Sequence record: MK250021.1
Length of the DNA stretch: 64,000 bases
Direction: 5' to 3' (one strand)
Below are positions 7,788 to 62,921 of this stretch, piece after piece. The position numbers and the translations under genes were made by a program. Within the stretch, counting starts at the first letter, position 1. The number at the start of each line of letters is the position of its first letter. Below the pieces are notes generated by a model. The model was given only the letters and a program-made list of their open reading frames with translations, was not told the origin of the DNA and made no database searches.

Positions 7788-8836
7788 TGATTAAAGATAT
7801 ATCACAAATAAAGGATAAATCTGTTAGTTTTATAAAGGAATTTATTAATAACTGTACGATAGAAGAAAAAATAGATGCTCATTATGTCATTGTTGAGATA
7901 ACATCTAAACAACATATTACTATTAAAAAAGCAAATGGAAAAGTAGTTGATAGAGTTGATATGATATTAAACAATATGTGGAGTCAATTAGTCACTGATT
8001 GGAATTTTATTAAACTTGCTAATCAGGAGTTTTTTAACACACATATTGGATATAATATATCGATGTTTTATTTTCCTAATAATAAGCCTTTACTGACAGA
8101 ATATCCAGATAATATAAAATATCTTATAGATAGAATTACATATAATGACGAATTAATTAATGTAGATTCATTTGTAAATAAATTGAAATTAAAAGATAAG
8201 TTCAATATTCATATTAAACATAATTTAACAAAGAATTTATCAAATGAAATAGATACCATTAATAAAATTAACGGTGATAGAAAATCAGATATTAATTATA
8301 AGTTATTATTTCAAAATATAATTGATAGATCTACATTATTAGCAAAAGAGCCTGAAGGATTTATTTATAAATGGAAAAAGAATCTCTATCAGTTAACATA
8401 TTATGATAGAGAAAAAATAATTCCAGAAAAAACTCAATATGAATATTTGCTTTGTGATTTTGTATCTTATTGTAAGTCACATAATTATCAAGATAAGATT
8501 CATCATAGTTATGTAAAAACCGTATGTTCTTTATTCAATGATTATATAATTAATTGGGAAGAGGTAAATCATAATATTGAAAATAATATAGATATAAACA
8601 GTATTCAATCACCATCATTAGGAACGACTTTTGATATGGGATATGAATATATACCTGATATTATTACAATGAATTTATGCAAATCAAATGAATTATATAA
8701 AAGTATATTTAAAGTATTATTAGCGAACCTTCGTAGAGGAAAAGATAATAGTAAATGTATATACATGAATAAGAAACAAGTTGATGATTGGAATATTATA
8801 ATGAAAAATATTAAGATTAGAACTTTAACTATTTAA
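7787..8836 (+). CDS. Hypothetical protein with ligase-like motifs (EKIDA; EGFIYK)
   Basis: 349-aa ORF; motifs resemble nucleotidyltransferase motifs I and IV. Confidence 0.4.
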   Translation: MIKDISQIKDKSVSFIKEFINNCTIEEKIDAHYVIVEITSKQHITIKKANGKVVDRVDMILNNMWSQLVTDWNFIKLANQEFFNTHIGYNISMFYFPNNKPLLTEYPDNIKYLIDRITYNDELINVDSFVNKLKLKDKFNIHIKHNLTKNLSNEIDTINKINGDRKSDINYKLLFQNIIDRSTLLAKEPEGFIYKWKKNLYQLTYYDREKIIPEKTQYEYLLCDFVSYCKSHNYQDKIHHSYVKTVCSLFNDYIINWEEVNHNIENNIDINSIQSPSLGTTFDMGYEYIPDIITMNLCKSNELYKSIFKVLLANLRRGKDNSKCIYMNKKQVDDWNIIMKNIKIRTLTI

Positions 8837-8869
8837 TAAATATATAAAATTAAATATTTTTATAGAATT

Positions 8870-9136
8870 ATGACCCATATTCATTATAATATAACAAGTA
8901 CACATGTTAATCCAGAAATTCCAGGTGATAATATAGAAATTCATGAACCAAAGGAAAAACCGGTTGAGAAAATACCTGGTTGGATGCATGTAGATCCTAT
9001 AAGTACATAGATAGATTTAGAATCTGTTGCTTATCAATTATCAGATTATAAATTTACACCAGGGTTTAAAGTTACGGTAGATGATTTACTTCATCCAAAA
9101 CCTTTAGATTATGAGGCAACACCTAAATTTAAATAA
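8870..9136 (+). CDS. Hypothetical protein, 88 aa (one TAG), absent from the track
   Basis: ATG 8870 to TAA 9134-9136 with one internal TAG, followed by a terminator. Confidence 0.65.
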
Positions 9137-9140
9137 ATGA

Positions 9141-9173
9141 AAGAGGAATAACAAGCAAGTTATTCCTCTTTTT
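9141..9173. terminator. Bidirectional intrinsic terminator
   Basis: AAGAGGAATAAC-loop-GTTATTCCTCTT plus T tract between convergent genes. Confidence 0.75.
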
Positions 9174-9184
9174 ATATTCTATAA

Positions 9185-9466
9185 TTAAATAGAATAATTA
9201 ATATTCATAATATCAAAAAGTTGATTAAGATGATCTGTTGTTTGAACTTCTACAGATGCAACAGTATTATGTTCATCATTATCAATAATACATGTCCAAT
9301 TTCTTCCTACCATATTTGTTTGTAAATTATGAATAGTTATTGTAAATGTATGATTAAGTTCTCCTACAGTTTTATAAAAGTAATCTGCTTCATCAAAATC
9401 TGCAAAACCTTTATCATGATTATATTCAAATTTATGAAATAAAAGTAAATCCTTTGTAATATCCAT
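9185..9466 (-). CDS. Hypothetical protein, 93 aa
   Basis: Intact ORF in a tightly packed operon. Confidence 0.7.
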   Translation of the reverse strand: MDITKDLLLFHKFEYNHDKGFADFDEADYFYKTVGELNHTFTITIHNLQTNMVGRNWTCIIDNDEHNTVASVEVQTTDHLNQLFDIMNINYSI

Positions 9467-9476
9467 GTTTAATTAT

Positions 9477-10331
9477 TTAATCTTCATCATTTAAATCCTC
9501 AAATTCTTCATATGATAATAGTAATTTATCATATTCTTTAATCATTGTAGATAAAATTTGTTTTTGCTCTGATACATACTGTTTATCAAAATGCCAACAT
9601 TGTCCTGCATATTTACATGGAATAAACATACCGTTTTGACTTTCTAACATTATACAGAATGATGCCCAATTTACAACTGATTCTGAAAGTTCTTTCCAAT
9701 TTATAGTTGAATTATTATAAAAACTCATAACACCATTCATTTGAGAAAATTGATTCCAACAATAATTATATGGCATATAGTCTCTATATTCATCACTATT
9801 TAAATCTGTGACAACAAATAGTATACCTCCAGTAAATTCATTAAATACATTATCGCCTACACCAATCAATTCCAAACATTTCTTCATCTTTGGAATTTCA
9901 TATGTCATTGCTTTATATATAGAATATTTCTCATATATAACAGTATATTCATATTTTTCTGAAGTATGAAATACTGAACACATTTTTGTTATATTTTCAA
10001 AAAGTGTTTTAATATTATCTTTTTGTTCTTCATATGAAACATATTTATTATAATCTCTTAATATTGTATATATAATATCATTAAATTTCATATGTAATTT
10101 CCCTTCTATCATTCGTGTAGTTTCATCCTCTTCATATTCAAAATCATCACTACCTCCATACTCATCCATATATCCTATAACAGGAATATGCATAGGTATT
10201 AATGGACTTTCTAAATAAGTAGGATTATTTCCAAGTTTATGCTTATTTCTACGACAAATAATAGCAATTACTTTCTCTCTATTCCTTATTGGAATTCTTG
10301 AATGAAATCCAGATACGCAAAAATCACCCAT
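9477..10331 (-). CDS. Hypothetical protein, 284 aa
   Basis: Intact ORF. Confidence 0.75.
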   Translation of the reverse strand: MGDFCVSGFHSRIPIRNREKVIAIICRRNKHKLGNNPTYLESPLIPMHIPVIGYMDEYGGSDDFEYEEDETTRMIEGKLHMKFNDIIYTILRDYNKYVSYEEQKDNIKTLFENITKMCSVFHTSEKYEYTVIYEKYSIYKAMTYEIPKMKKCLELIGVGDNVFNEFTGGILFVVTDLNSDEYRDYMPYNYCWNQFSQMNGVMSFYNNSTINWKELSESVVNWASFCIMLESQNGMFIPCKYAGQCWHFDKQYVSEQKQILSTMIKEYDKLLLSYEEFEDLNDED

Positions 10332-24259: not shown

Positions 24260-24693
24260 NNNNNNNNNNNNNNNNNNNNNNNNNNNNNNNNNNNNNNNNN
24301 NNNNNNNNNNNNNNNNNNNNNNNNNNNNNNNNNNNNNNNNNNNNNNNNNNNNNNNNNNNNNNNNNNNNNNNNNNNNNNNNNNNNNNNNNNNNNNNNNNNN
24401 NNNNNNNNNNNNNNNNNNNNNNNNNNNNNNNNNNNNNNNNNNNNNNNNNNNNNNNNNNNNNNNNNNNNNNNNNNNNNNNNNNNNNNNNNNNNNNNNNNNN
24501 NNNNNNNNNNNNNNNNNNNNNNNNNNNNNNNNNNNNNNNNNNNNNNNNNNNNNNNNNNNNNNNNNNNNNNNNNNNNNNNNNNNNNNNNNNNNNNNNNNNN
24601 NNNNNNNNNNNNNNNNNNNNNNNNNNNNNNNNNNNNNNNNNNNNNNNNNNNNNNNNNNNNNNNNNNNNNNNNNNNNNNNNNNNNNNNNNNNNN
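24260..24693. other. Assembly gap (N run, 434 nt)
   Basis: Run of N. Confidence 1.
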
Positions 24694-44297: not shown

Positions 44298-44476
44298 ATA
44301 TTTAATAAAATAAAAAAGTTTATAACATGTAGTTGCAAATTTACCTGTAATTAAAAAAGATACAGGTTTACCACTATTTTACATGTTGGACGAATGTCAA
44401 TATTATTATATATATGATATTTATCAATAAAGGCAAATCTATTCCTTAGATTTGCCTTTATTCTGCTATTTAATAA

Positions 44477-46027
44477 TTATGTAATTTCTTTTCGTTTTTC
44501 AAGTATATGTTTTAATATTTCATATTCTGTATTCGCTATTTTCTTATCCATTTTTGCTGCTTTACGCAATGCAAAATAATGTGTAAGAATCGCAGGAACA
44601 ACAGCATTTGGATCTTTTTTATAAACTGCGCCAGAACATGTTTTAATCTCATCAGATTTTGGGATATAATTCTTATCTTTGAATAAGAATGATTCAGGAG
44701 AAATTTGAAATTGTCTCATTATAGATGGATATAGTGACGCGAAATCTAATCCACCTATATATTTAAATATTCCTGGTCTAGTTGGCCACACAAAAGCTCC
44801 AACATATTGATTATCAGTTAGTTCTGTGTTTTTATTAAATGGTTTTTCTGGTATTACCTTATAATTTGGGTACACAAAGTTACACATAACAACATGTGTT
44901 GGTTGAATTGTAGAGAATGCGACATTTAGTTCAAGTCTCAATTCACATGCGAGCATATACCAAATTTCAGCAGTCTTTAAGAATCTGTCTATATGTTCAA
45001 CCAATATGGTATCGATGCAGTTATAGAAAACATATTCTTTGAAATGTTCTTCGAAGAATTCTTTGAATCCCCACGGGTGATTTACCTTCTTGATACCTAA
45101 CGCTTTTTCTGCGACAAAATCAAGTGTATTATTTTCTTTTGGTTGGATAGTCATGTCCCATGTTTTATAAACCAATAAGTAGTCATAAATTATTTTATGC
45201 ATAGGGACTTTCACATTGATTGTTTTACCACCGGATCTTGGAGTAATCTTAAAGTTTGTGAATGTTCTTGTAGGAGAAATTCTTTCAATATCAATATTAT
45301 TGATTTTACATCTATTATAGATATATAACCAGTCGAATCCTAGAAAATTCCATCCAGACATTGCAGGAATTGGTTCGATGAATGTTATATAGTCTTCAAG
45401 CATTTCCCGTTCTGTTGGAAAAAATCTGAATTCAAATTTATATCCTTTTGTAATATCTGATCCATTGTTTTCCTATGAATACTTATCGATTTGTTCTTGG
45501 ACCCATTGTTGTTCTTCTAATGTTAAGTCTTTACGTGACCAAATGATAGTCCTAGGAAATTGTGTCATTGATATAGTATTGATACGAGTTGACGCTTCTT
45601 CTGGATCTGGAAATCCTTCATCTGAAACTTCTGTCTCAATATCACACCACCATGTTGGAGGAATATTCATTTCAAACAGAGGATCAACTGCATGTCCAAA
45701 TGAATTAAGAATTTCATTTATTCTTAATTCAGGAAGTTTATCAACAGGATGCCTACGAACCCATTTATTATCATAAGATTTCCATTGGTGCATAACAGGT
45801 GAACCGTCTGGATTAAACTTATAACATTTGTTTACAAAATCATATTCTTGAAATGGAGGATCTGCATTTTGTCTGTTCGTATATTTCCATTCGAACATTG
45901 ATTCTTTAGGAACAGGATATTGAAGGAATTTAACTTGCCCTTGTTTATCTATATATGATACTATTAATTTCTTTGTCGGTGTGCCATCAGGCAATAAATA
46001 ATCTACCTATTCTTTATTAATTATCAT
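44477..46027 (-). CDS. polB: Family B DNA polymerase, N-terminal subunit (exonuclease, motif A, first finger helix), 516 aa (2 TAG)
   Basis: CDIET (ExoI), WNFLGFDW (ExoII), YNCID (ExoIII), GLDFASLYPSIMR (motif A), RKAAK; ends at TAA with no intein. Confidence 0.93.
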
Positions 46028-46052
46028 AAATGTATAATGATATATTTTCTGA

Positions 46053-46661
46053 TTAAATTATTTTAGATATTATCTTTAATTTAAGAGCTTCTTCTGAAGT
46101 AAGAATCCAATCTTTCTTTCTTGAATAATTATCTTCAAGTTCTTTTCTTGTTATTGCTGTTTCTTCAATGATTAATTTATATATCATTTCAGTAAGTCTC
46201 TTCGCTTCTTTAACATCATCTTCTAAATCTGCTGTTTTCCCGATTGCAACAGAAGATGCTTGATGAATTAAGAATGTTGTATTCTTGGTCGCGAATCTTT
46301 GTTCATAAGGAACAGAAAGAAGAATACAAATACCTGCAGACATACATGCGCCAGTTGCAGTGATATTTGTCTTGCAATGATTATTAAGCATTATTAACAT
46401 ATCATGAATTGCATAACCTTGATAACATGTTCCTCCATATGTGTCTAACCATACATTAACATCTGGTATTTTAATTTCTTCTTTTATATTATGACCGAAA
46501 AATTCTTTTAATGCTTTTTTATTCTCATCAATTATATTATTATCCCCTGTAATTAAATTAGTTACCCATTTAATAATATCATCTGATGTTTTTTCATCAA
46601 TATCTTCTGTAATATATAAATTTCTCTTTGTTACATCAAATGTCTACAATTTATTTTCCAT
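46053..46661 (-). CDS. clpP: Divergent ClpP-like protease, 202 aa (TAG at codon 6)
   Basis: LDTYGG, ACMSAG (Ser), FLIHQ (His), DWILTSEEAL. Confidence 0.85.
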
Positions 46662-46697
46662 ATATTAAAATTTATTAAATATAATTTTAGTTTAAAT

Positions 46698-46726
46698 ATT
46701 ATAGTGAGAAAATTGCGATTTGTTTA
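46698..46726 (-). promoter_or_regulatory. Class II promoter TAAACA-N17-TATAAT
   Basis: Heads the clpP2-polB(N) operon. Confidence 0.65.
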
Positions 46727-46806
46727 TATATAAAAAAGAGATAATAGAATTAAAATAAACTCTATTATCTCTAAAAATATATTTTCATTATTATAAAAAA
46801 AGATTG

Positions 46807-47436
46807 TTATCTTCTACCACCGAAATGTCCACCACCATTAAAATTACCAGGTCTTCCTTGAGTAACTCTCGTTGAACTTCTATCTGACCCAAATCCTTGA
46901 GGTCTTCTCTGTTGATTACCAAAATTAGGTCTACCGCTCTGTGGTGGGCGTTGCATATTATTTGGTTTATTAGGTTGTTGTCCATTTCCAAATGATGGTC
47001 TATTATTAGGTCTACCATAATTCATTGGCTGATGATTATGTTTCATAGGAGGATTTCTAAAATCATTTGGTCTTCCAGATCGCATAGGCGGTTTTCTAAA
47101 TTCATAACCACGTGGTGCAGGTCTCATAAAATGTCTATAACCTGGATGGTAATGATATACAAATCCCCTTGGTTTCATATAAGGGGATGGATAAAAATAC
47201 CAATAATTATTATACCTATATGGATAATAATAGATTCCTCTATATAAGTAATAACTTAAAATATTATCTATATAATATGGTGTTCCATACATAATGACTG
47301 TAGAAAAATCTACTGTAGTTGAAACGGTTGTATATGTATCGTCATCATACTGTTGTGTAGATGCGAATGTTGTTGAACATGCTGAAAATGAAATAACAGC
47401 AAATAACATAATCAAAAAATATTTAATCTTTTTCAT
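46807..47436 (-). CDS. Lipoprotein with Tyr-rich core and disordered R/P/G-rich tail
   Basis: MKKIKYFLIMLFAVISFSA-C lipobox; ends GGGHFGGRR. Confidence 0.75.
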   Translation of the reverse strand: MKKIKYFLIMLFAVISFSACSTTFASTQQYDDDTYTTVSTTVDFSTVIMYGTPYYIDNILSYYLYRGIYYYPYRYNNYWYFYPSPYMKPRGFVYHYHPGYRHFMRPAPRGYEFRKPPMRSGRPNDFRNPPMKHNHQPMNYGRPNNRPSFGNGQQPNKPNNMQRPPQSGRPNFGNQQRRPQGFGSDRSSTRVTQGRPGNFNGGGHFGGRR

Positions 47437-47520
47437 AATCAACACACTTTTTATTATTTATATGATTTAATACATAATTTCTCTACAGTAAATTCATATT
47501 TGTTAGTATGAAAATTCATA

Positions 47521-47985
47521 TTACTTAATACCAAGATGTCTGTCTATCTCATCTTGCGTCTTTACATTATAAACCATTTCATTGATACCGAAATCTTCAC
47601 TACCAAATACAATACCATCTTCATCTACACTGTAATTAGAGACAGACTTCATATATTCAAGTTTCTTTTTATCTGATGGCATTGCTTTCGCTCTCTTATG
47701 ATCATCAAAATATTGATCTTTATAAAACATCCAATAATCAAGAATATCTTTATCTGATTGTTTTTTGATTGCATCAAATGCTTCATCTTTTGTTTTATAT
47801 GGACCTCCAAGTTTCCAGCCCACACGATATGCATGAATTTCATCTTGTGTCATATCACCTGTATAAACATCTTCCATGTTAGAATACCATGTGAAGTATT
47901 CCTCTACATTCTTTGATTCATTAACAGATGTTGAATTACTATTCATTACAGCATTGTAAAATTCATTCTTTTGCTTTGTATTCAT
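47521..47985 (-). CDS. Hypothetical protein, 154 aa (VNES motif)
   Basis: Intact ORF. Confidence 0.7.
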   Translation of the reverse strand: MNTKQKNEFYNAVMNSNSTSVNESKNVEEYFTWYSNMEDVYTGDMTQDEIHAYRVGWKLGGPYKTKDEAFDAIKKQSDKDILDYWMFYKDQYFDDHKRAKAMPSDKKKLEYMKSVSNYSVDEDGIVFGSEDFGINEMVYNVKTQDEIDRHLGIK

Positions 47986-48018
47986 AATTTCAAATATTTT
48001 AATATGTTTAACTTACAA

Positions 48019-48031
48019 TACAAAGATACAT
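48019..48031 (-). promoter_or_regulatory. Class I promoter
   Basis: TACAAAGATACAT. Confidence 0.65.
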
Positions 48032-48052
48032 AAAATATTTGATATTAAAAAA

Positions 48053-48712
48053 TTATTGTATTGTAATATTATATGTCCAACCATCTTTATTATATATTTG
48101 AGAGTCACTGGGAAAATAAACTACTCCAGCGTTTGGTATATCATATGTTCTAGTTTGATATTTTGAGGACGATTCTCCTATATTCATTGTTAGACTTACT
48201 ACAGTTTCAGAAGAAGTATATCTTATAACCATATCTACAACAATAGTATTTCCTACTGGTGAATTATTTTTATAAAAATAATTTTTTACTAAATATGCAC
48301 CATAAATCATTTTTGAACTATTCTGCATATTATACACAAACATTATATCTGCTTTTCTTTCATACACAGTAACAGTTTGCTAAACTTGGAATAATATATT
48401 TCCATTATACTTAAAAGTAATAAGGCGTGAAGATGTTGTTTCTGAGATATTATAGTATATTGACCGACCTGTTGTTTTATCTTCACTACTAGCTGCGTCA
48501 CTGACTCTCGCAGAGCATCCAGATGTATCGCATGTTAATGAAAAAGTATCATTTCCTAATTTATTATTAAAATTACCATCAATATCCTATAAACCAAAAA
48601 ATACCTATCTTGTTGGTAGAACACCAAAAGCACTTGTATCTAACATGCCACTTTTTGCATCCTAATTTATTTGCATAATATTTGTACCTGTATATTTCTA
48701 AAAAGTTGACAT
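48053..48712 (-). CDS. Beta-rich protein, ~219 aa (5 TAG), possible BACON-like tail/adhesion domain
   Basis: Open from ATG 48712 through TAG; S/T-rich; ETTSSRLITF...FQV*Q resembles a BACON C-terminus (weak). Confidence 0.55.
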
Positions 48713-48784
48713 AAAATAAAAAGTATTTTTATATCTACACCCCAATATGAAATACTATAACTTATTTTACATAACTAATAAATA

Positions 48785-49678
48785 ATGAAAAATAATTATT
48801 CATTTCAAATGAATTCTAAATAGATAGGGAAATTAATATATAATTTGGATTTGGGAAAATTCAATTATAAAACAAAATTATTTGAATCTAATAATAAAGA
48901 TAATTGGTGGAGAAATGAAGAATCATATAATACAATAAAATATCATCCATTAAATTCAAATACAAATAATCTATTGTATAAAGAATATGAACAAGAATAT
49001 CTATATGAAGGATTAATAAGTTCAGTAGAACCAAATAAAACAAAAAATATATTAGATAGAAATGCTGGAGGATTTATACATGATATACGCATTGTATATA
49101 ATCCTTTATAGTTAGATATGAAAACACCAGTTATTGATTTCTTTATATATAAAGAAGATTATTATGATTTAGAATATGGTAAAATTGCATATGATGAATT
49201 ATTAACATTAATTAATAATTTAGGATATTTTGTATCAGGTAAAACAGAATTATCAGATATTATAAATGTTGTTATAATGCCAAAATTTTTATACGAAGTA
49301 ACATATGAAATATATAAAGGAGATGGCTTTTTATTTCATATAACTCCATTATAGAATAAAAAGAAAATATTACAAAAAGGATTAATACCAAAATATAAAA
49401 ATTATAGGTTAGATAATTATCCAGATAGAATATATTTTTATACAAGTAAGCAAGAATCTAAATTAAATTTATTATGTAAAAATTTATCTAATAATACATG
49501 TATAAAAGATTGGTTAATTCTTAAAGTAAATATTAAAGATAAAAAAAGTTATAAAGAAAATGATAAATCTACAATGTACAGATTTTTTGAAGATCCAAAA
49601 TCATAGTATGGCATTTTTACATATGAAAATATAGATCCTTAGTGTATATCTATATATAAAGAAATAAGGTTATCATAA
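48785..49678 (+). CDS. Protein with a C-terminal ADP-ribosyltransferase/Tpt1-like fold, 297 aa (5 TAG)
   Basis: Joins track ORFs 48845 and 49118; LFHITP...ILQKGLIPK...PDRIYFY...YRFFEDP motif. Confidence 0.55.
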
Positions 49679-49702
49679 ATATTGATAACCTTATTTTTAT
49701 AT

Positions 49703-50353
49703 TTAATAAATTCTACATTCAACTGATTGATCAACTTCTCTCTCCATACAATAACTTGCAAAGAAATCAGCTTGCATAATCAACACTGACAAAGGAACTT
49801 TCTGATATGACTGTTGCATAGAAGGTTTTTGATAATTACTCATCCATGCTCCAATATCACTCATACCCATATGCCACATTATAGCACACAATTCTTCACC
49901 ACTCAACTTAATAAATGATTGCGCAATGAAAATAGACTTCGGTGCATGTCCAAGTGGAAGTTTCTCGTCTATCTTATATGAATAATACTTAATCCATTGG
50001 TTAGACTCATCTTTCTTAAACTTTTCATACATTACATAATTATTTGCTTTACACAAATCATGTAACAATGCGCAAATAATTAATGAATCTTCAGAAATAC
50101 TATCAATGTTTTTCTCTGGAAGTGCCAACTTTTTATATGTCTCTAAAAATCCTTTGGCCGCATAATATACATTCAATGAATGCTGACATAATCCTCCCGG
50201 ATAATTACAATGATAAATCGTAGAAGACGGTGCTTCAAAGAAATCTGATTTCTCTGAAAGCCAACTAATCAAATTCTCAATACCTTCACGCTTTGTACTT
50301 CTAAGTAACTCAATAAATTCTTGTTTATTCTTCTCTTTTACTATTTGATCCAT
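49703..50353 (-). CDS. HD-domain phosphohydrolase
   Basis: YHCNYPGGLCQHSLNV, LLHDLCK, GH, WHMG, AD. Confidence 0.88.
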   Translation of the reverse strand: MDQIVKEKNKQEFIELLRSTKREGIENLISWLSEKSDFFEAPSSTIYHCNYPGGLCQHSLNVYYAAKGFLETYKKLALPEKNIDSISEDSLIICALLHDLCKANNYVMYEKFKKDESNQWIKYYSYKIDEKLPLGHAPKSIFIAQSFIKLSGEELCAIMWHMGMSDIGAWMSNYQKPSMQQSYQKVPLSVLIMQADFFASYCMEREVDQSVECRIY

Positions 50354-50389
50354 AAAATTTATTATGTTTAAAAATTAATAATTATATTC

Positions 50390-50418
50390 ATTATATAATT
50401 ATACTTTATAAAAGTTTA
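50390..50418 (-). promoter_or_regulatory. Class II promoter TAAACT-N17-TATAAT
   Basis: Motif with 17-bp spacing. Confidence 0.6.
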
Positions 50419-50529
50419 TATAAACAATTCATATTATTTTTTATATAAATAAAATTAATATTAATAATAAATATAAAGATGTAAATATATGAAAACTAAA
50501 TAAAAACATAAGATAAAATAAATTTAATT

Positions 50530-52035
50530 ATGAAAACTAAATTATTGATTTTTTTAATGTGTGCATTCAGTTTTATAGGATTTACTGGATGTTCTACAGA
50601 AGTAGAGAACAACAACACTATCATTATTCCAGGTTATAATGGAACTGAGGTGGTGAAGACAGGTTCTAACTTACTTGTCAATGTTGGAGAAAATAAGTAT
50701 GGTGAGAAAACACAAGCATTATCAAGAGTAAAAGCAATAACACGTGCATCCGTTGATAAATCAACTATTTCGATTACAACAGATGATCAAATCAATACAC
50801 CTACAATTGGTTTGTATTCAAACTATGCATGGAATACTTACACTAATGGTCAGCAAATCTATGTTGGTGCAAGCAATGGTTATCTTTTTGCAACAACATC
50901 ATTGACAACACCTTACAAAACCGAATGGAATGTTAATAATACCATAAGTAATGGTGTACTTACATTGACATCACAGATGTTGGATGACAAATATGCTAAG
51001 CCTGTTCCTGTGACATTCTGGGGTAATCATTCATTAGTAACATCAAGTGTAGAAAAAACAATCTTTGATCCTAATGATAATGATTGGAAGAATATGGCAG
51101 TGACAAGTACAACAAAGTCTGTTGCTATCTCAAAGTCTATTGAATACGCAAATTCAGCTGTTAGAATGAATTTGACATTAGGAACAGAAGGTGTTCTTTG
51201 TTGGTATGACAAGTATGATACATCAAAAGATGAAGCTGATGTTACAACAGTAAAGATAACAGAAGATAATATCAATACTATGCCAACTTCTGAGACAAAG
51301 ACTTATGAAGTAAATGGTAAACAATATAAAATTATCAATATTGATAATATTGGTAGCAAGACCGTAGGAAATTACTTGCATTACAAAGCAGGTTATGCTA
51401 TAAAGATTGCACAAACGGACAAAGGTACAGGAAACTGGCACTTCATTGGTCCTAATGAATCAGATGACATCAACTATGAAGTTCTTGAAGCACGCATTGT
51501 TTCATCTAAATCTTGTACTTATAAGAATGAATATCAATATGAACCAAGTTCAGATGAAGTTACTTATAAGTATGAGTTGAATGAATCACTTCAATCAGGT
51601 GAGAATGCAGTATTCTCTATTATGCCAACATCAGAAAAATCATCTGTTGTCGTTTTGAAATGTAAAATCACAAAATTCCCAACGCAAGATCATGATAGAT
51701 TCCTTTGGTATATCAAAGAATCAATAAAAGATAATTCACCTTACATAAAAGTTGGTGATAACTCTACATTCTATATCATTGGAAAGATTTCAACATCTGA
51801 CAAGACAATACCTACAGGTTCACCTTACTCAACAACATGGAACAAAGGTATTTATTGTCCTGATGTAATAACTAATGTAAATGTACATATTGATGATCTC
51901 ACGGTAAATGGTTCCGTTGTAGTTGATCCAGATGGTTCAGATGAAACAGATATTAATAAGATACATTATAATTTCGATTATGAATATGGTACTATGGATG
52001 GTGTTTGGACAACAGGAAATACAACAAAACATTAA
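50530..52035 (+). CDS. Lipoprotein, 501 aa, type V pilin (Mfa/Fim)-like
   Basis: Lipobox FTG-C; ITR-A after a ~50-aa propeptide; T/S-rich beta sequence; C-terminal FYIIGKI...VTNVNVHIDDL...W. Confidence 0.55.
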   Translation: MKTKLLIFLMCAFSFIGFTGCSTEVENNNTIIIPGYNGTEVVKTGSNLLVNVGENKYGEKTQALSRVKAITRASVDKSTISITTDDQINTPTIGLYSNYAWNTYTNGQQIYVGASNGYLFATTSLTTPYKTEWNVNNTISNGVLTLTSQMLDDKYAKPVPVTFWGNHSLVTSSVEKTIFDPNDNDWKNMAVTSTTKSVAISKSIEYANSAVRMNLTLGTEGVLCWYDKYDTSKDEADVTTVKITEDNINTMPTSETKTYEVNGKQYKIINIDNIGSKTVGNYLHYKAGYAIKIAQTDKGTGNWHFIGPNESDDINYEVLEARIVSSKSCTYKNEYQYEPSSDEVTYKYELNESLQSGENAVFSIMPTSEKSSVVVLKCKITKFPTQDHDRFLWYIKESIKDNSPYIKVGDNSTFYIIGKISTSDKTIPTGSPYSTTWNKGIYCPDVITNVNVHIDDLTVNGSVVVDPDGSDETDINKIHYNFDYEYGTMDGVWTTGNTTKH

Positions 52036-52097
52036 TTATTAAGTTATTATAAAATTAAAAGGAATATAAACAACTAAGTTTATATTCCTTTATTTTT

Positions 52098-52358
52098 TTA
52101 CTTATGACTTTCAATTTCTTTATTAATATCATCAATAGAAACAAGTCCCACCCATTTCTTTAATTCTTCACCATTATCACCTTCCAATACAATAACAGGA
52201 ACATTTCTGATATTATACTTATCAATAACTGCAGATGTTTCATCATCTTCATCATCTACATCATATTTCTTTAATTCACATGTATTAAAGTTTTCCAACC
52301 TCTTATCCATTACATTACATGGACCACACCATGTAGCACCTACTTTAATTAATCTCAT
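52098..52358 (-). CDS. trxA: Thioredoxin
   Basis: ATWCGPC; IRNVPV. Confidence 0.93.
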   Translation of the reverse strand: MRLIKVGATWCGPCNVMDKRLENFNTCELKKYDVDDEDDETSAVIDKYNIRNVPVIVLEGDNGEELKKWVGLVSIDDINKEIESHK

Positions 52359-52376
52359 ATTATTTAAAAATTATTT

Positions 52377-52805
52377 TTACCAACATTCATAATCTGTAAT
52401 ATCTTCAGAATCACCATTTTTGTTACATACAATACGTATACAGCTACCAATACCAGTTCCTCCTTCAATAAACGAAAATGGAAGCTTATATTTACTTTTT
52501 ACATTCCAATTATCTTTATTGTAATTCGTAACATCTTCAGATTCATTACATGTTTCACATACATATGTATGGCTAAAACCACAATTCCACATATCAATTA
52601 AATATACAGAACCTCTACCACCATTGCACACTGCTTTATGCTTTACATAAAAATTATGTGCATTCTTTTTTTCTATATCATCCATTTCAGTAAATCCATG
52701 ATTATCTTTCAATAATGCAATAGATGTGATACAAGACTGTGTACCAACATCATTCTCATGTTTATTAATAAATGATATAGACATTTCTAATTCTTTATCT
52801 GTCAT
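52377..52805 (-). CDS. Hypothetical protein, 142 aa, with an internal duplication
   Basis: Two copies of a GG.G...C...SED(V/I)T(N/D)Y..W unit. Confidence 0.7.
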   Translation of the reverse strand: MTDKELEMSISFINKHENDVGTQSCITSIALLKDNHGFTEMDDIEKKNAHNFYVKHKAVCNGGRGSVYLIDMWNCGFSHTYVCETCNESEDVTNYNKDNWNVKSKYKLPFSFIEGGTGIGSCIRIVCNKNGDSEDITDYECW

Positions 52806-52832
52806 CTTATTAAAATTAATTCAATATTTTAT

Positions 52833-52861
52833 ATTATATGAAAAAAGGTAAGATTTGTTTC
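52833..52861 (-). promoter_or_regulatory. Class II promoter GAAACA-N17-TATAAT
   Basis: Motif with 17-bp spacing. Confidence 0.55.
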
Positions 52862-52893
52862 TTAATCTTACCTTTATATTTTATTTACTATTA

Positions 52894-53868
52894 TTACCAA
52901 AGTGCGGCTGTATAACATAAGTTAGATGTTAATGTAGTATAACCAATAATAGATATAATTCTATTACAAGGTTCAAGAATCATTTTTTCAAATTGTTTAT
53001 CATAATCTATTTCAGGTGCATATTCTATTGGATAAGCGCCAGGTAAAAATGCAAAACAATCATAATTTCTATCCTTTGCATAATACCACTTAACTTTATC
53101 TGCTGTCTTAATAGGATTATACTTTACCTTATATTTCTTATTCTTTGGTTGATTCAAAATAAAGTTAGCAATTCCTGAAGCCTTAACCTGAATAGGACAA
53201 TGTTCTCCGAATACCAACTTATTCTTATCATCAAGAACGAACTTTTGATAATTTCCTATTGAACTACCTTTTGAAATCTCTGATGGATCTTTAAACATAA
53301 ACTGTTGTTTATATCCCTTTATTTTCGCAATAATATCTTCATATGGTGGTCTTTCCTTATGTTCCTGATACCAATGCAACATATAACATGTAAAGTCTTT
53401 TTGACATTCTCTTGCAAATGGTGGTGTAGAACCTTGAACGATCTCAAGTCCCTTATAAACGACTTCTTCCATTTGCTCCAAGAAAATATTAGGTTCCTTA
53501 AAACACTCTGCCATTGCATAATGTTTCTTTGAAGTCAAGATAGTTGTATCTGCAATTTTCTCTAACTCAAGATTCTGAATATTTACATCACAATTATATT
53601 TCTTTGCATATTCCTCATATTTCTGTTGCATATATGGTCCACAACCATAATTCCAAAGATCAACAACAAATTGTGCACATTTAGACTCTGGAATATCAAG
53701 CTGTTGACAAATTCTTCCAAATTCTACATATATTGAGTTGTGAGCCAGTATCTCATTTGCGAAGAATGTATGAGTATCATCTACCTCAATATCATATACA
53801 TACTCATCATTAAAATCTTCAAGTTGCTCTATTACATCAATATCCTCTACTTGTATATTGTAATTCAT
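52894..53868 (-). CDS. polB: Split-intein C fragment fused to the PolB C-terminal part (palm end and thumb)
   Basis: YVYDIEVDDTHTFFANEILAHN|SIY; then LELEKI, KKHYA, KGLEIV. Confidence 0.93.
   Translation of the reverse strand: MNYNIQVEDIDVIEQLEDFNDEYVYDIEVDDTHTFFANEILAHNSIYVEFGRICQQLDIPESKCAQFVVDLWNYGCGPYMQQKYEEYAKKYNCDVNIQNLELEKIADTTILTSKKHYAMAECFKEPNIFLEQMEEVVYKGLEIVQGSTPPFARECQKDFTCYMLHWYQEHKERPPYEDIIAKIKGYKQQFMFKDPSEISKGSSIGNYQKFVLDDKNKLVFGEHCPIQVKASGIANFILNQPKNKKYKVKYNPIKTADKVKWYYAKDRNYDCFAFLPGAYPIEYAPEIDYDKQFEKMILEPCNRIISIIGYTTLTSNLCYTAALW
53737..53868 (-). mobile_element. Split intein IntC (PolB), 44 aa, acidic
   Basis: Blocks F and G with terminal His-Asn and +1 Ser; own ATG. Confidence 0.92.
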
Positions 53869-53927
53869 CTTTTTTCTCCTATTATTAATTGTGTATTTTC
53901 AACATTATTAAAATGTTCTAATATATA

Positions 53928-53956
53928 ATTATATAAATAATTTTTTATATTGTTTT
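53928..53956 (-). promoter_or_regulatory. Class II promoter AAAACA-N17-TATAAT for IntC-polB(C)
   Basis: Motif with 17-bp spacing 60 nt upstream of ATG 53868. Confidence 0.55.
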
Positions 53957-54731
53957 TATATCTTCTCTATCTTTATGTGTTTTATAGAATATCCAGTTAT
54001 CAATAAAATATGGATAAATGAATAACATATTTAATTTATTATTTTTGCATCTTCCCATTTTTGAATATCAGTTTCTGTCCATGTATGAATTAATCCATCA
54101 TAATTATTTTTCGTATTTGTTTTAGAACATTTACTTAAAAAATAATTATACTTATCTTTATCTAATTCTTTATTATATAAACATTTATTATGCCAAAATG
54201 ATCCTTGATACTCTATATATAAATTATACTGTTTTATATAAAAATCACAATTATGATTATATTCTTTTGTTTTATAACATCTTATAACATCATCACCATA
54301 TAATTCATTTAAAAAAACATATAAAATTTCTTCTTCAATAGATGTTTTATATGATTTATGCTTATTATAAGATTCTGTGACTTTATCTTGTATTTCTGAT
54401 AACTATGAAATATAATCATCATCTATTACCATATCATATTATTATGTTCATTTCTATAATTCTTTTCATTATAACAACACTCATCGAATTTTTTCACTTT
54501 TTCTATATATTCATCTATAATATCAATACCTAAATATTTTGCATATATTATTTTTGCATCTGATATATCACATTTATCATTCATTGTAATACAATTAACA
54601 TTATTATTCAATGCAAAGTATATATCTTTATATGTTGATATTATTTGTTTAAGAAAATATTTTAATAACGTATTATGTTTCTTAAACATATTATTCCTTA
54701 TAATCCTTATTTTTGAACGATAATATATCAT
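53945..54731 (-). pseudogene. Degenerate Vsr/EDxHD-like homing endonuclease (two frameshifts)
   Basis: CDFYIKQYNLYIEYQGSFWH; frame breaks near 54430 and at an A5 run near 54042-54046. Confidence 0.7.
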
Positions 54732-55846
54732 ATTTCAGTTATATCATTTAATTGATCTTTATTATTAATCATCTATATAAGTGATTTTATAGTTCCTTTC
54801 TTATCATTTTTATATGTAGATTCCCAAACTATTATAACCTTGCAATTCAATGTCTGTTGAATATCTTCAATTCTTTCTCTATCATGATTCCATTTATCTT
54901 TAACTGAACGTCCGTTTCTTAATATAAAATAATTTGTTTCATTAGCATTATATTTCTTTGGATTAAAATGATAAAAATCTCCATAAAATTCTATAACAAT
55001 ATTTAATGATTTATCGTAATAATCTACATGATAAAAATTATTATTTAATAACTTAACTGTATATTCTATATAAGTATCATTATCTTTATAATATTCTTTT
55101 AAATGAGAAAATAACTCTAATGATATATTTGACTTATTACCTATTAAATAATATTGTTCTGAACGTTTTTCTACAAATTCATTATATTTTTGTGTTCCAT
55201 CTTCTTTACCGTATTCTTCGATAAAATAATCTAATGTACATGTATATCTCTGACGTTCGATATAAGCATTCCATATTTTTAAACCATCTATTTCACCATG
55301 TCTTTTAATAAGATTTTCCTTTGTTACCGCTCTAGATTTATTGTATTCATCAAATTTATCTTGAGACATACCATATTTTTCATGTTTATATTCATATGTA
55401 TTTGTAACTGATTGTTTATTACAATATGAATTCCATTTTTCTAATCCTATATCTTTTCCATATCGTTTAATCATTTTTTCTTTGGTAACACATTGTCTTT
55501 CTTTTGCTACAGGGTTGAAATCCTTATCAGGTACTCCAAATCCATACTACGTATATTTTGCAGCTTTATGCGCAAATTTAAATTTTACATCTTTAAAATT
55601 TGGAAATTTCTTGCATACACAATCATAACACCTACATAAATGATATTCATTACCATTATAATTTCTAGTACTTAAAAATGATAACTTATTATTATCACAT
55701 ACTATTTTATGTGTTTTTGAGTTTATATGAAATGTACCATTATCATATATAAGAAATTTACCACATTCTTTACAATAACATATTGATGGATCTATATTAT
55801 TATCTTTACAATATTGAACTACGTTCTATTCACTTAAATATTTCAT
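54728..55846 (-). CDS. Free-standing homing endonuclease (Vsr/EDxHD-like), 372 aa (3 TAG)
   Basis: Starts at a TAATG overlap with the IntN stop; Zn-ribbon Cys, K(R/Y)G repeats, VDYY...IEFYGDFYH. Confidence 0.85.
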
Positions 55847-56658
55847 TATCTATCTAATGTTATAATTTTATCAGATTTTTTTATTTCTCTTGCAGGAACA
55901 GATATTAATTCATTATTTCGTATAACCATTATACTATGATCACCTGTAACTATAAGCTCTTTACCGGATTTAGTTTTTAACCTAAACTTATCTTTAGTTA
56001 CTTTATGTCTCATTATATAATTAATCGGTCGTGTAATAGTTTTATAATCATGATCCTTATATGATAATGTATCGTGATTATGTACAGGAATGACTTCAGA
56101 CCCATTTTGTAATTTTATAACAACATCGTCATTTTCATATTTTGCTTTAGTAAAAAAGCCTTCCATTGAAAATACTTTATTATCTATAACTACTTGAGTA
56201 TCAGCAGTTTGCGAATCCGTATCCCCCGCTACAGTTAGTGATTGGTTTCCATCAAGATACGAAAACTCGGGTCCGTCCAACGTACCTGTTTCAGTTGTCT
56301 TACCTTTTGCGATACTTACTCGTTTTGCTTTCTCCGAATCAATACCGAGTTTCTTATGCAATTCTGTATCATTCTGAAATATACCACTGAAATACGCGTT
56401 AACAGAATTCTCAGAATAATGGTTCAAATCCTGACCCTGAAGAGTAATAGATTCTGCGACTGCTGTGTTATGCGCAATGAAATACTTGCTCGCGGTAGCT
56501 CCATAAACACTATTGATAAATTTCTTTAACGCTAACTGCTTAGTCTCATAAAAATCCCCTAAATTTTTTAATCTTTCTACTTCTTTTTCAAGTTCTTCAA
56601 TACTGCAATTCTCAGGGTCTACTTGGCAAAATTTATAATTCTTATGTTGTTCTTCCAT
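55846..56658 (-). CDS. polB: PolB middle part (motifs B and C) fused to split-intein N fragment
   Basis: QLALKKFINSVYG (motif B); AGDTD|SQTADT; block B LIVTGDHS; TAA stop. Confidence 0.93.
   Translation of the reverse strand: MEEQHKNYKFCQVDPENCSIEELEKEVERLKNLGDFYETKQLALKKFINSVYGATASKYFIAHNTAVAESITLQGQDLNHYSENSVNAYFSGIFQNDTELHKKLGIDSEKAKRVSIAKGKTTETGTLDGPEFSYLDGNQSLTVAGDTDSQTADTQVVIDNKVFSMEGFFTKAKYENDDVVIKLQNGSEVIPVHNHDTLSYKDHDYKTITRPINYIMRHKVTKDKFRLKTKSGKELIVTGDHSIMVIRNNELISVPAREIKKSDKIITLDR
55849..56214 (-). mobile_element. Split intein IntN (PolB), 122 aa, Ser-initiated
   Basis: Inserted after DTD of motif C; TxxH block B; lacks blocks F/G. Confidence 0.9.
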
Positions 56659-56682: not shown

Positions 56683-56711
56683 ATTATACAAATAAAAATT
56701 CTATTTGTTTA
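56683..56711 (-). promoter_or_regulatory. Class II promoter TAAACA-N17-TATAAT for polB(mid)-IntN
   Basis: Motif with 17-bp spacing. Confidence 0.65.
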
Positions 56712-56747: not shown

Positions 56748-58406
56748 ATGGAAATTACAGATCAAATTATAATAGATAAGTTAACAGTATTTAGACATAA
56801 TAAAATACAATTAAATACATGTAGAATAAAAGAAACATGGTTAAAAGATCATGGTTTATATGAGTATTTAATTAATAGATTTAAAACCATAGATAATATT
56901 CAAGAAATTATATATAGGATATATTATAAATTACCGGATAATTTACAGTTACATTGTAATACTTGTGGTAATGAAATACCTTTACAATTTAGAGGATTCT
57001 TATATGGATATAATCAATATTGTTCTTATAAATGTTCTTTAAATGATCCAAATAAAATACATAAATTAACAAATGTAAAACAAAAAGATGATATAGATGA
57101 TAATTATGTATTGAATTTAATGATTAAAGACAATAGATTAGTTTCAGAATATTGTAAGAATAAAAAACTTAAACAATTTGGTATATATGATTATATGATG
57201 AATAGATATGGCGATTTACAGAAAAATAAATCTATTATTCAAGAAATTATATATAGAATGAAATATCATATAGATAAATCTCCTCGATGTCCAACATGTG
57301 GGAAATATGTTAACTTTTATAGATTTAGTGAAGGATTCAGACATTATTGTTCAAATGAATGTGCAAATAAGAATGAAAATAATGTTAACATAAAATTAAA
57401 TAATAAGCATAAAACTATAGAAAATAAATGGTTAAACCGTGGATATAAAATTAAATATACAGAAAATAAAAATGAATTTCTTGTATATAATCAATGTAAT
57501 TTACATAATCCATTTAAAATTAAAAAATATACATTCTTTAATAGACAAGGAAAAGATATAATTATGTGTCCTATTTGTAATCCTGAAAAAAATATGGAGA
57601 CTTCTATAGAATATAAAATTAGGTTAATATTAGAGAAACATAATATAAAATTTACGCAACATGTTAGGTATATAATATCACCAAGGGAATTAGACTTTTA
57701 TTTACCTGCTTATAAAGTAGCAATAGAATGTAATGGGATTTATTGGCATTCAGGGATAAACGGTAAAAATAGATTTAAAGTTAAATATGAACTATTATCC
57801 AAAACTGATATATAGATGTTAACTTTTTGGGAAGACGATATTCATTATAACATTGATAAGATAGAAAATATCATATTAAGAAGTTGCAATTTAGAAAAGA
57901 AATTATTTTCAAATGATACTGTTATTAGAGAAATAGATATTGATATATGTAAGTCATTTATTAATAATAACTCAATTAAAAAATATATTATATCTAATAT
58001 AAATTTAGGTTTATTTAAGGATGATAAATTATTATTTGTTATGACATTTTCAAATAATAATGATAATAATTATACATTAAATCAAATATGTTATAAAAAT
58101 AATTTATATGTTATAAATTCTGAAAAATTATTATTATATTATTTTTTTAATAATTATAAATTTAATAAATTGATAACATATTGCGATTTAAAAATTGAAA
58201 ATAATAAATTATATGAAAAATTAGGATTCAAATTAAATAGTGATAAATTAAAATTTAATCTGAATTATTATAATTATAGAACAACTGAACATAGAATTAA
58301 TAAGAAAGAAGTTAATCAATTATTGAAATTAGATGATTCTGATTCATTAGAAGATTATATGAAATGTTATTCAGGATATTTAATATATGAGAAAGAGAAT
58401 GTATAA
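56748..58406 (+). CDS. Homing endonuclease (Vsr/EDxHD, Hef-like C-terminus), 552 aa (one TAG)
   Basis: Track ORFs 56748-57815 and 57816-58406 join through TAG; duplicated CxxCG/CSxxC modules; LDFYLP...AIECNGIYWH. Confidence 0.82.
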
Positions 58407-58413
58407 TTTAAAT

Positions 58414-59634
58414 TTATATACATTCTCTTTTATTATTTTCTAAATATTCATTTATTATAGTTTTTATTATTTCTATCTTATTGCTCCATATAGGAAGATA
58501 ATTCAGATTATTCATTTTCGCAGTTTGACATTTAAAAGGATCAATGATTGACCAAACATTTACAGCAGATTTATATTGTTTTGATATTTCTGCTTTTTGT
58601 TTCCACTTATTTAATAAATCAATATCATCTTTATTATCTTCATCAAATAAATGTTTCCCATGTGTCCAAAATGCGTTTATCTCTATAAATAAATCTAATG
58701 GTTTTATATAGAAATCTACATGGAATGGATAACGCTCATCAACATTTACATTAAACTATATATCATCTTTATCAAATATTGTTTGTAAATATTCATATGT
58801 TTGATATTCTGGTTTTGACATACCAAAATTATCTTTATATTTTTTCTTTATTGTTTTTACATATTGATCAAACTAATATTGATGAAAATTTTCTAATGAA
58901 CCATATTTTTTAATAACAGTTTCTTTTGTCTTTTCTTTATTATTAAATGTTGGATCCCCATATAATTCTAATTTTGTTTCTTTAATTTTGTTTTTTATTT
59001 CTTCATTTTTTGCAGGGTTATCAACGCCATATTTTTTAATAACAGTTTCTCTTGATTTTTCTTTATTATTATCTGACTAAAAACTATATTTACACCCATA
59101 TTTTTTTAAACATGTATTAATTGATTTCTATTTAACTTCTTCATTCTATCCTGAAAATTCTACANNNNNNNNNNNNNNNNNNNNNNNNNNTGTCTTCTAT
59201 AAATATTCCGATGTTTTTGTATATGATGAAACTCCATATTTTTCTAAACATGTTTGTTTTATTTTATCTTTAACTGATTTTAACTACATTTGATGTTCAA
59301 CACCATATCGTTCTTTTAATGTATTTTTTATTTTATTCTATACATTAACTGAATTCATTACACATCGTGAATTTGAACAAAATTTACGAAATCCTCTACT
59401 ATAACAATTAAATCTCACAGGTTTCCCACATGTTTCACATACTGGTCTTATTTCTATTTTATTTACAATACGGTATATTGTCTCCTATATAGATTCGCTA
59501 TCATTATATCTATTAATTAAATAATCATAAATATCTTGATGTTTATTTAACCAAGATAATCTTGTATAATTTTTTGCTAACTAATTCTTTTTTGTTATAA
59601 ATTTTTCTTTTATGTAGTCATCATTAATAATCAT
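58414..59634 (-). CDS. Homing endonuclease (Vsr/EDxHD-like) with KYG repeats, many TAG, spans a 26-nt gap
   Basis: CETCG/CSNSRC, repeated T..KKYG units, VDFYIKPLDLFIEINAFWTHG; absent from the track. Confidence 0.78.
59165..59190. other. Assembly gap (N run, 26 nt)
   Basis: Run of N inside a repeat-rich endonuclease gene. Confidence 1.
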
Positions 59635-62892: not shown

Positions 62893-62921
62893 ATTATATA
62901 TGTTTTTTATTAATTTGTTTA
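62893..62921 (-). promoter_or_regulatory. Class II promoter TAAACA-N17-TATAAT for uvsX
   Basis: Motif with 17-bp spacing. Confidence 0.65.

Follow-up and report, generated by a model that had tools for sequence, protein, structure and literature searches.

Can a replicative DNA polymerase whose parts lie in three separate genes, kilobases apart and out of order, be a single enzyme, and how would its parts be brought together? This question is raised by a stretch of 64,000 nucleotides from sequence record MK250021.1 (the window, by which we mean the whole stretch of DNA that was analysed), in which one family B DNA polymerase (PolB) is spread over three open reading frames (ORFs) on the minus strand. 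The window is from the genome of a Prevotella phage Lak-B megaphage, in which TAG is read as glutamine. Its DNA has a G+C content of 20-30%, long reading frames arise only with TAG as a sense codon (among them one ORF of 1991 amino acids, aa), and one of the 2 TAG codons in the N-terminal polymerase piece, codon 7, is aligned with a Gln that is conserved among homologues; the reading of TAG as Gln was adopted because the genome itself shows it in these ways. The N-terminal piece is 99.6% identical to that of Prevotella phage Lak-B2 and its sister genomes, and 513 of its 516 residues are identical in the copy from the IMG/VR record G001. With TAG read as Gln, the three ORFs are as follows.

44477-46027, minus strand: N piece, 516 aa; Pfam DNA_pol_B_exo1 and positions 28-153 of DNA_pol_B
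55846-56658, minus strand: mid piece, 270 aa; positions 148-239 of DNA_pol_B, then the N part of Intein_splicing
52894-53868, minus strand: C piece, 324 aa; the C end of Intein_splicing, then positions 261-346 of DNA_pol_B

The PolB of the Lak megaphage is encoded as three separate genes, which result from one plain break at the fingertip and one break at a split intein. The PolB matches to Pfam exceed the cut-off on the N and mid pieces, and the nearest named relatives of the pieces are the gp43 polymerases of T4-like phages. A sequence-only reading of this DNA had described a polymerase in three parts, with two independent breaks and with its N-terminal subunit 6.9 kb downstream and free of any intein. 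All of this was borne out: the three ORFs carry consecutive parts of the protein, the N and C pieces share a strand, on which N begins 6.9 kb downstream of C, the same layout was found in nine Lak-B genomes and in G001, and the two breaks are backed by homology and by precedent. We consider it probable, at roughly 0.85, that the single replicative T4-type PolB of Lak-B is made as three polypeptides, which would yield a trans-spliced B subunit and an N subunit that is bound non-covalently.

Three genes, one polymerase

The three pieces tile a contiguous homologue of 942 aa (P0002, 53% identity) from end to end, with N on residues 1-508, mid on 517-666 and C on 667-942, so that only about 8 loop residues are left unaligned. 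Together they contain the features that mark a family B polymerase of the T4 gp43 type, namely Exo I-III, motif A (DxxSLYPS), motif B (KxxxNSxYG) and motif C (DTDS). Furthermore, of the PolB columns found to be invariant among 19 fused PolBs, 37 out of 37 are retained; N holds 24 of them, mid 8 and C 5. When Lak-B was compared with Lak-A1, the synonymous and nonsynonymous codon differences were 142 and 51 in N, 78 and 31 in mid, and 91 and 16 in C. Synonymous differences far exceed nonsynonymous ones in all three pieces, which are therefore functional genes under purifying selection and not debris.

These observations bear on the possibility that mobile elements have destroyed the polB gene, of which the pieces would be the decaying remains, and that the genome is replicated by another polymerase such as a split minimal enzyme resembling DNA polymerase III (Pol III). 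The polB locus is indeed crowded with ORFs resembling homing endonucleases, and an extra split Pol III-like enzyme has been reported in the group 2.2 jumbo phages, including Lak-B8 (Iyer et al., PMC7824862). However, this explanation is highly improbable in view of the excess of synonymous changes, the intact state of every invariant PolB residue and of every catalytic residue of the intein, and the fact that the set of three pieces has been retained from one Lak clade to the next and in protein clusters that number more than 120 and extend to about 50% identity.

It could also be argued that N acts on its own as a proofreading exonuclease or as an accessory factor, perhaps with some other partner, and is not an obligate half of a polymerase. 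N is unlinked from mid and C in most Lak genomes, it has its own transcription signals, and stand-alone proteins of the N type are very common. Nevertheless, N carries motif A with the catalytic Asp of the palm as well as the triphosphate-binding Arg and Lys of the first finger helix, which would be useless without motifs B and C, and mid and C are without motif A and have no other source of it. In a Lak-like genome that is 100% complete (G003), the PolB matches are exactly these three, and therefore no alternative partner is available for either piece; the sequence-only reading had allowed for a different partner elsewhere in the genome, and G003 has none. Since contiguous homologues show that N, mid and C make up one fold, we regard a separate role for N as very unlikely.

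A plain break between the finger helices

The N piece holds Exo I-III, motif A in the form DFASLYPS and the first finger helix with the conserved R488 and K492. It had been read as stopping after the first finger helix, and it does terminate at the last turn of this helix; the fingertip loop and the second helix are supplied by the mid piece. In the AlphaFold2 model of the fused P0002 (predicted local distance difference test, pLDDT, of 85.6), the finger helices cover residues 470-507 and 531-566 with the loop at 508-530, and these helix ends therefore put the break at the start of the fingertip loop, which corresponds to about residues 500-515 of T4 gp43. Thus, two ORFs are broken between the finger helices, and neither Pfam nor the alignment to P0002 revealed an intein motif or spare residues on either side of the break. 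The fused relatives P0001 and P0002 run continuously across this position. Their helices are the same and the length of the loop is identical, and the suggestion of a new helical leader and new termini at the split was for this reason abandoned. Likewise, the coiled-coil zipper proposed for the split is simply the ordinary fingers hairpin, as it occurs in contiguous homologues.

Two other ways of joining N to mid were considered and rejected. A hidden intein at the break is ruled out by the lack of spare residues, and joining at the RNA level or ribosomal bypass is ruled out by the location of the two genes, which are 7-227 kb apart and sometimes on opposite strands. A separate observation on this region concerns Cys18 of the mid piece, which is located in the fingertip loop (DPxxC) and is invariant in an alignment of 13 diverse mid pieces; a Cys in this loop is also found in some fused relatives (P0001 and P0007), but not in P0002.

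A break at the fingertip is known in the T4-like phages 133, 44RR, 31, 25 and 65 (PMC3061061, PMC2988022), and the gp43A and gp43B subunits of phage 25 co-purify and are active (PMC2988022). In addition, a Pfu polymerase engineered with a split at the fingertip kept its full activity (PMC3061061). The polymerases of two further phages, Aes516 (Gp43A and Gp43B1) and PTm1 (ORF-236 and ORF-239), are broken at this position too.

A split intein and putative endonuclease genes within motif C

The second break, between the mid and C pieces, is of a different kind. The features of this part of the locus are listed below in the direction of the minus strand.

56215..56658, minus strand: mid extein, residues 1-148, with the fingertip loop, the second finger helix with motif B (KKFINSVYG), and the palm up to the DTD of motif C (it ends in GDTD)
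55849..56214, minus strand: N-intein, 122 aa, residues 149-270, with Ser1, block A (SQTADTQV) and block B (TGDH)
54728..55846, minus strand: free-standing gene for a putative Vsr-like homing endonuclease, 372 aa, with a match to the VSR endonuclease of PTm1
54031..54731, minus strand: two small ORFs (101 aa and 133 aa), of which the second has a weak Vsr motif
53737..53868, minus strand: C-intein, 44 aa, with blocks F and G, ending in AHN
52897..53736, minus strand: C extein, 280 aa, from Ser45 (Ser+1, which completes DTDS), with the rest of the palm and the thumb

The sequence is that of a class 1 intein beginning with Ser1, in which S149 is followed by QTADT, TGDH is present, and the terminal AHN is followed by Ser. 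Pfam Intein_splicing matched the N half with 42.4 bits and the C half under the cut-off. The order on one strand at one locus of an ORF for N-extein and N-intein, an ORF for an endonuclease, and an ORF for C-intein and C-extein is that of a fractured gene. When the complex of the two intein halves was predicted, it scored 0.84, while the best of 3 controls scored 0.00; 51 of 78 solved complexes attained this mark, as did 2 of 108 mismatched pairs. The runs agreed in at least 84% of the contacts, with a partner pLDDT of at least 72. This modelling supports the view that the halves bind each other, and since mid and C each contribute one half of an intein that is intact by its sequence, with the halves complementary to each other, the two pieces should be ligated by trans-splicing.

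The 372-aa ORF is homologous to ORF-240 of PTm1, the "VSR endonuclease", which is located at the same position (E=1e-19), and no close paralogue of it was found elsewhere in the window by tblastn. The endonuclease content differs among Lak genomes, as expected for mobile endonuclease genes. For instance, the 372-aa gene is missing from Lak-A2, the 133-aa ORF is missing from both Lak-A1 and Lak-A2, and the segment 54031..54731 is missing in Lak-A1 and mostly missing in Lak-A2, in which mid and C are separated by only 368 bp, compared with 53900-55857 in the window. On the other side of the mid piece, the ORFs at 56748-58406 (plus strand) and 58414-59634 (minus strand) resemble free-standing endonuclease or DNA-binding genes; one of them has weak Vsr/DUF559 matches, and the other has DUF7487 and spans a run of N at 59165-59190. 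The polB locus lies within a group of genes that resemble mobile elements.

Dassa et al. (2009, PMC2677866) described fractured genes that contain Vsr-like homing endonucleases, and the jumbo phages MIJ3 and PA5oct have a PolB intein that is allelic and split, accompanied by an HNH endonuclease (PMC6892783).

Proposed assembly of the enzyme

The preferred explanation, a PolB of three polypeptides, can be laid out in the following steps. A Ser1 intein would have been inserted after the DTD of motif C in one mid/C locus, and this intein would itself have been broken by a free-standing gene for a Vsr-like homing endonuclease, giving rise to the fractured gene. After translation, the intein halves would pair and trans-splice, and a gp43B-like subunit of about 428 aa would be formed. 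The gp43A-like N subunit would then join the B subunit non-covalently, re-forming the native two-helix fingers hairpin and a shared palm. The active site would need both subunits, because motif A, R488 and K492 are on N and motifs B and C are on the pieces of the B type. The A and B genes would be independent transcription units that are free in their relative position. A heterodimer whose second subunit is made by trans-splicing had been put forward in the sequence-only reading; the complementary intein halves and the gp43A/gp43B precedent speak for it, by homology and not by experiment.

Three points weigh against this explanation. First, the score of the intein complex could reflect the model's memory of solved split inteins. 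Second, the Pfam matches to Vsr/DUF559 on the neighbouring endonuclease paralogues are below the cut-offs, and the 372-aa ORF has none. Third, the closest fused relative, P0001, is located just outside the clade of Lak and its sister phages (G005 and G008), and the break may have occurred in one event or in several.

Gene order among Lak and related huge phages

The relative position of the polymerase genes was compared among the Lak genomes and the genomes of related phages, with the following arrangements.

Window and all Lak-B: order mid, C and N, all on the same strand, with 6.9 kb before N
Lak-A1, Lak-A2, Lak-C1 and the Lak-like G002 and G003: N on the opposite strand, at about 220-228 kb
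G008, a sister of Lak: B gene without intein, N 13 nucleotides (nt) later
G005, a sister of Lak: B gene with a contiguous mini-intein, N 4.1 kb later
G004 (673 kb): mid and C followed on the same strand by N, after 59 kb
G006: pieces 179 kb apart, opposite strands
G009, G011 and LR756500: A then B, 10-58 kb apart
PTm1 and Aes516: colinear and compact

The order of middle, C-terminal and N-terminal pieces seen in the window is kept throughout Lak-B; in Lak-A and Lak-C this synteny is lost, with N on the opposite strand about 220 kb away. The spacing of 6.9 kb is one state among many and not a conserved design. Given the varied arrangements among relatives, the A and B genes therefore behave as independent loci. 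The synteny breakpoints between Lak-B and Lak-A1 are near position 49690 and at 50380-52090 of the window. The HD-domain gene at 49703-50353 flanks the polB mid/C block from the opposite side in Lak-A1, and the lipoprotein-like gene at 50530-52035 (plus strand) was unmatched in the two stretches of Lak-A1 that were examined.

Another possibility is that the B-before-A order with its 6.9-kb gap is an artefact of assembly. The Lak genomes are metagenome-assembled, and the window contains two runs of N. However, these runs, at 24260-24693 and 59165-59190, are both outside the three PolB genes, the same order is found in nine Lak-B genomes and in independent IMG/VR contigs (G001, L013 and L014), the Lak-A layout is repeated in the independent assemblies G002 and G003, and the sister phages G005 and G008 likewise have B before A. 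We therefore give an artefact next to no credence.

The closest relatives of the Lak N piece are those of G005 and G008 (59% identity). In G008, which is a 262-kb IMG/VR phage, the B gene encodes 516 aa and forms an adjacent pair with the N gene (G008:C1:219000-226000, 2073-5175), and the B precursor of G005 is 686 aa in length, with a mini-intein at the Lak intein site but without an endonuclease (G005:C1:358500-370500, 1768-3828; N at 7960-9522). Thus, the state of the PolB intein differs among close relatives, in which it is absent, contiguous or split. The B-then-A pair of G008 cannot be produced by simple insertion into a contiguous gene, and tandem duplication followed by partial deletion is a possible route to this order.

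Prevalence and history of the split polymerase

The frequency of the split was estimated from the 150 best cluster representatives matching N. About 110 of these are stand-alone proteins (450-580 aa) that end at the fingertip and 24 are fused, so that the split state is the majority, accounting for 110 of the 134 representatives that were classed as split or fused. On a quickly built FastTree phylogeny of the N region, in which "split" was inferred from length and the absence of the mid region, there are at least 13-15 changes between split and fused. Furthermore, pieces consisting of mid and N-intein, with lengths of 262-280 aa, are found on contigs of 370-530 kb; their clusters number more than 120 and extend down to about 50% identity.

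A more speculative extension, which we think unlikely, is that the two-gene PolB open at the fingertip is more than neutral debris left by invading homing endonucleases, and that in a very large clade of huge phages it is ancestral and maintained by selection. It would have arisen in Lak by a permutation through duplication and partial deletion, which is suggested because the adjacent B-then-A genes of G008, only 13 nt apart, would fit it. The split might be kept for a changed nucleotide selectivity, as in the engineered Pfu split, or for separate control of the dosage of the exonuclease and palm half, for example with a ClpP-like protease.

The ClpP-like neighbour and transcription signals

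Upstream of the N gene is a gene encoding a ClpP-like protein, and hairpins and promoter-like motifs were found around these two genes and around the mid and C pieces.

46053..46661, minus strand: ClpP-like gene, ending 25 nt upstream of the N gene
46698..46725, minus strand: promoter-like motif AAACA-N17-TATAAT, upstream of the ClpP-like gene and N
46737..46772, minus strand: terminator-like hairpin, which parts the preceding gene from the clpP-N unit
44426..44462, minus strand: terminator-like palindromic hairpin directly after the N stop codon (the scan listed it on the plus strand, and its stem is palindromic)
52844..52875, minus strand: terminator-like hairpin directly after the C piece
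56683..56710, minus strand: promoter-like motif AAACA-N17-TATAAT, upstream of the mid piece
53928..53955, minus strand: promoter-like motif AAACA-N17-TATAAT, upstream of the C piece

The pattern AAACA-N16-18-TATAAT occurs at 11 sites in the window (8774-62920), compared with 2.6 expected from shuffled sequences. It often has the form AAACAAAT, and most of the sites, which also include 52833-52860 and 62893-62920, are directly upstream of genes on the minus strand. Judged from its sequence and position, this pattern is a candidate phage promoter class. A generic sigma-70 scan of the window did no better than shuffles (126 found and 119 expected), and an 18-nt promoter word common to the upstream regions of mid and clpP was not enriched.

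Because of the gap of only 25 nt, the flanking hairpins, the promoter-like motif upstream and the adjacency of the two genes in Lak-A1, it is plausible that N is co-transcribed and co-regulated with the ClpP-like gene. This adjacency is retained in Lak-A1 and not in G005 or G008. A second clpP was not found in the window by tblastn. Between Lak-B and Lak-A1 the ClpP-like gene shows 62% aa identity, with 76 nonsynonymous and 53 synonymous codon differences, and it evolves much faster than the polymerase pieces. By eye, its Ser, His and Asp are still in ClpP-like contexts. As a further observation on the surroundings of the polymerase genes, an ORF of 86 aa resembling thioredoxin or glutaredoxin is located shortly downstream of the C piece (52098-52358, minus strand).

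Comparison with known systems

Unless the three pieces are recognised as one enzyme, Lak and many other huge-phage genomes seem to carry a truncated or partial PolB, and both PolB-based phylogenies and completeness checks must join the pieces. Once broken at the fingertip, the halves of the polymerase act as free genes; the distance between them ranges from 13 nt to 227 kb, and both orders and both strands occur. Nothing new is required in terms of mechanism. Both types of break are already known, from T4-like phages and from jumbo phages, and their combination in three parts is already annotated for Aes516 and PTm1. In the literature that was searched, no account of the Lak PolB split was found. 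What is new is that a phage has an intein-less break whose genes are permuted or dispersed, and how prevalent the split form is among huge phages.

The intein-less break of Lak is like that of gp43A and gp43B in the T4-related phages 25, 31, 44RR, 65 and 133 (Petrov et al. 2006, 2010, as related in PMC3061061 and PMC2988022). In both cases the break is located between the finger helices, with A comprising the exonuclease, motif A and the first helix, and B comprising the second helix, motifs B and C, and the thumb. In contrast, the genes of the T4-like phages are colinear, A then B, at a distance of 2 bp to 3 kb; this adjacent and colinear order is absent from the window. Lak-B has its B gene 6.9 kb ahead of A, and Lak-A and Lak-C carry the two genes on opposite strands at a distance of about 220 kb.

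Two phages combine both breaks. Aeromonas phage Aes516 (JN377905) encodes Gp43A, Gp43B1 with an N-intein and Gp43B2 with a C-intein, with the same fingertip break and a Ser1 intein after DTD, and Tenacibaculum phage PTm1 (AP019524) encodes ORF-236, ORF-239, the VSR endonuclease and ORF-241, with the same breaks and a homologous Vsr-like endonuclease between the intein halves. In both of these phages, however, N, mid and C are colinear within 0-2 kb, whereas the order in Lak is permuted or dispersed. Aes516 further differs from Lak in having no endonuclease gene between the intein halves and in having an annotated intron.

With respect to the intein, Lak shares the phage context, and would share the Vsr-like endonuclease family, with the fractured genes of Dassa et al., although none of their 26 fractured loci is a PolB (PMC2677866). 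The endonuclease of MIJ3 is of the HNH type (PMC6892783), unlike the putative Vsr-like enzyme of Lak. Lak differs from the fractured genes and from MIJ3 in the extra small ORFs nested between the halves and in the presence of the endonuclease gene in some Lak genomes and not in others. Finally, the halves of one family B polymerase are also produced from unlinked genes in archaea. According to PMC3061061 and PMC2677866, the PolB1 and PolB2 genes of Methanothermobacter are 85 kb apart, and the PolB of Nanoarchaeum equitans has a split intein. The break in Methanothermobacter is in the palm and the halves of N. equitans are joined by the intein, whereas in Lak it is the break without an intein that separates the unlinked genes.

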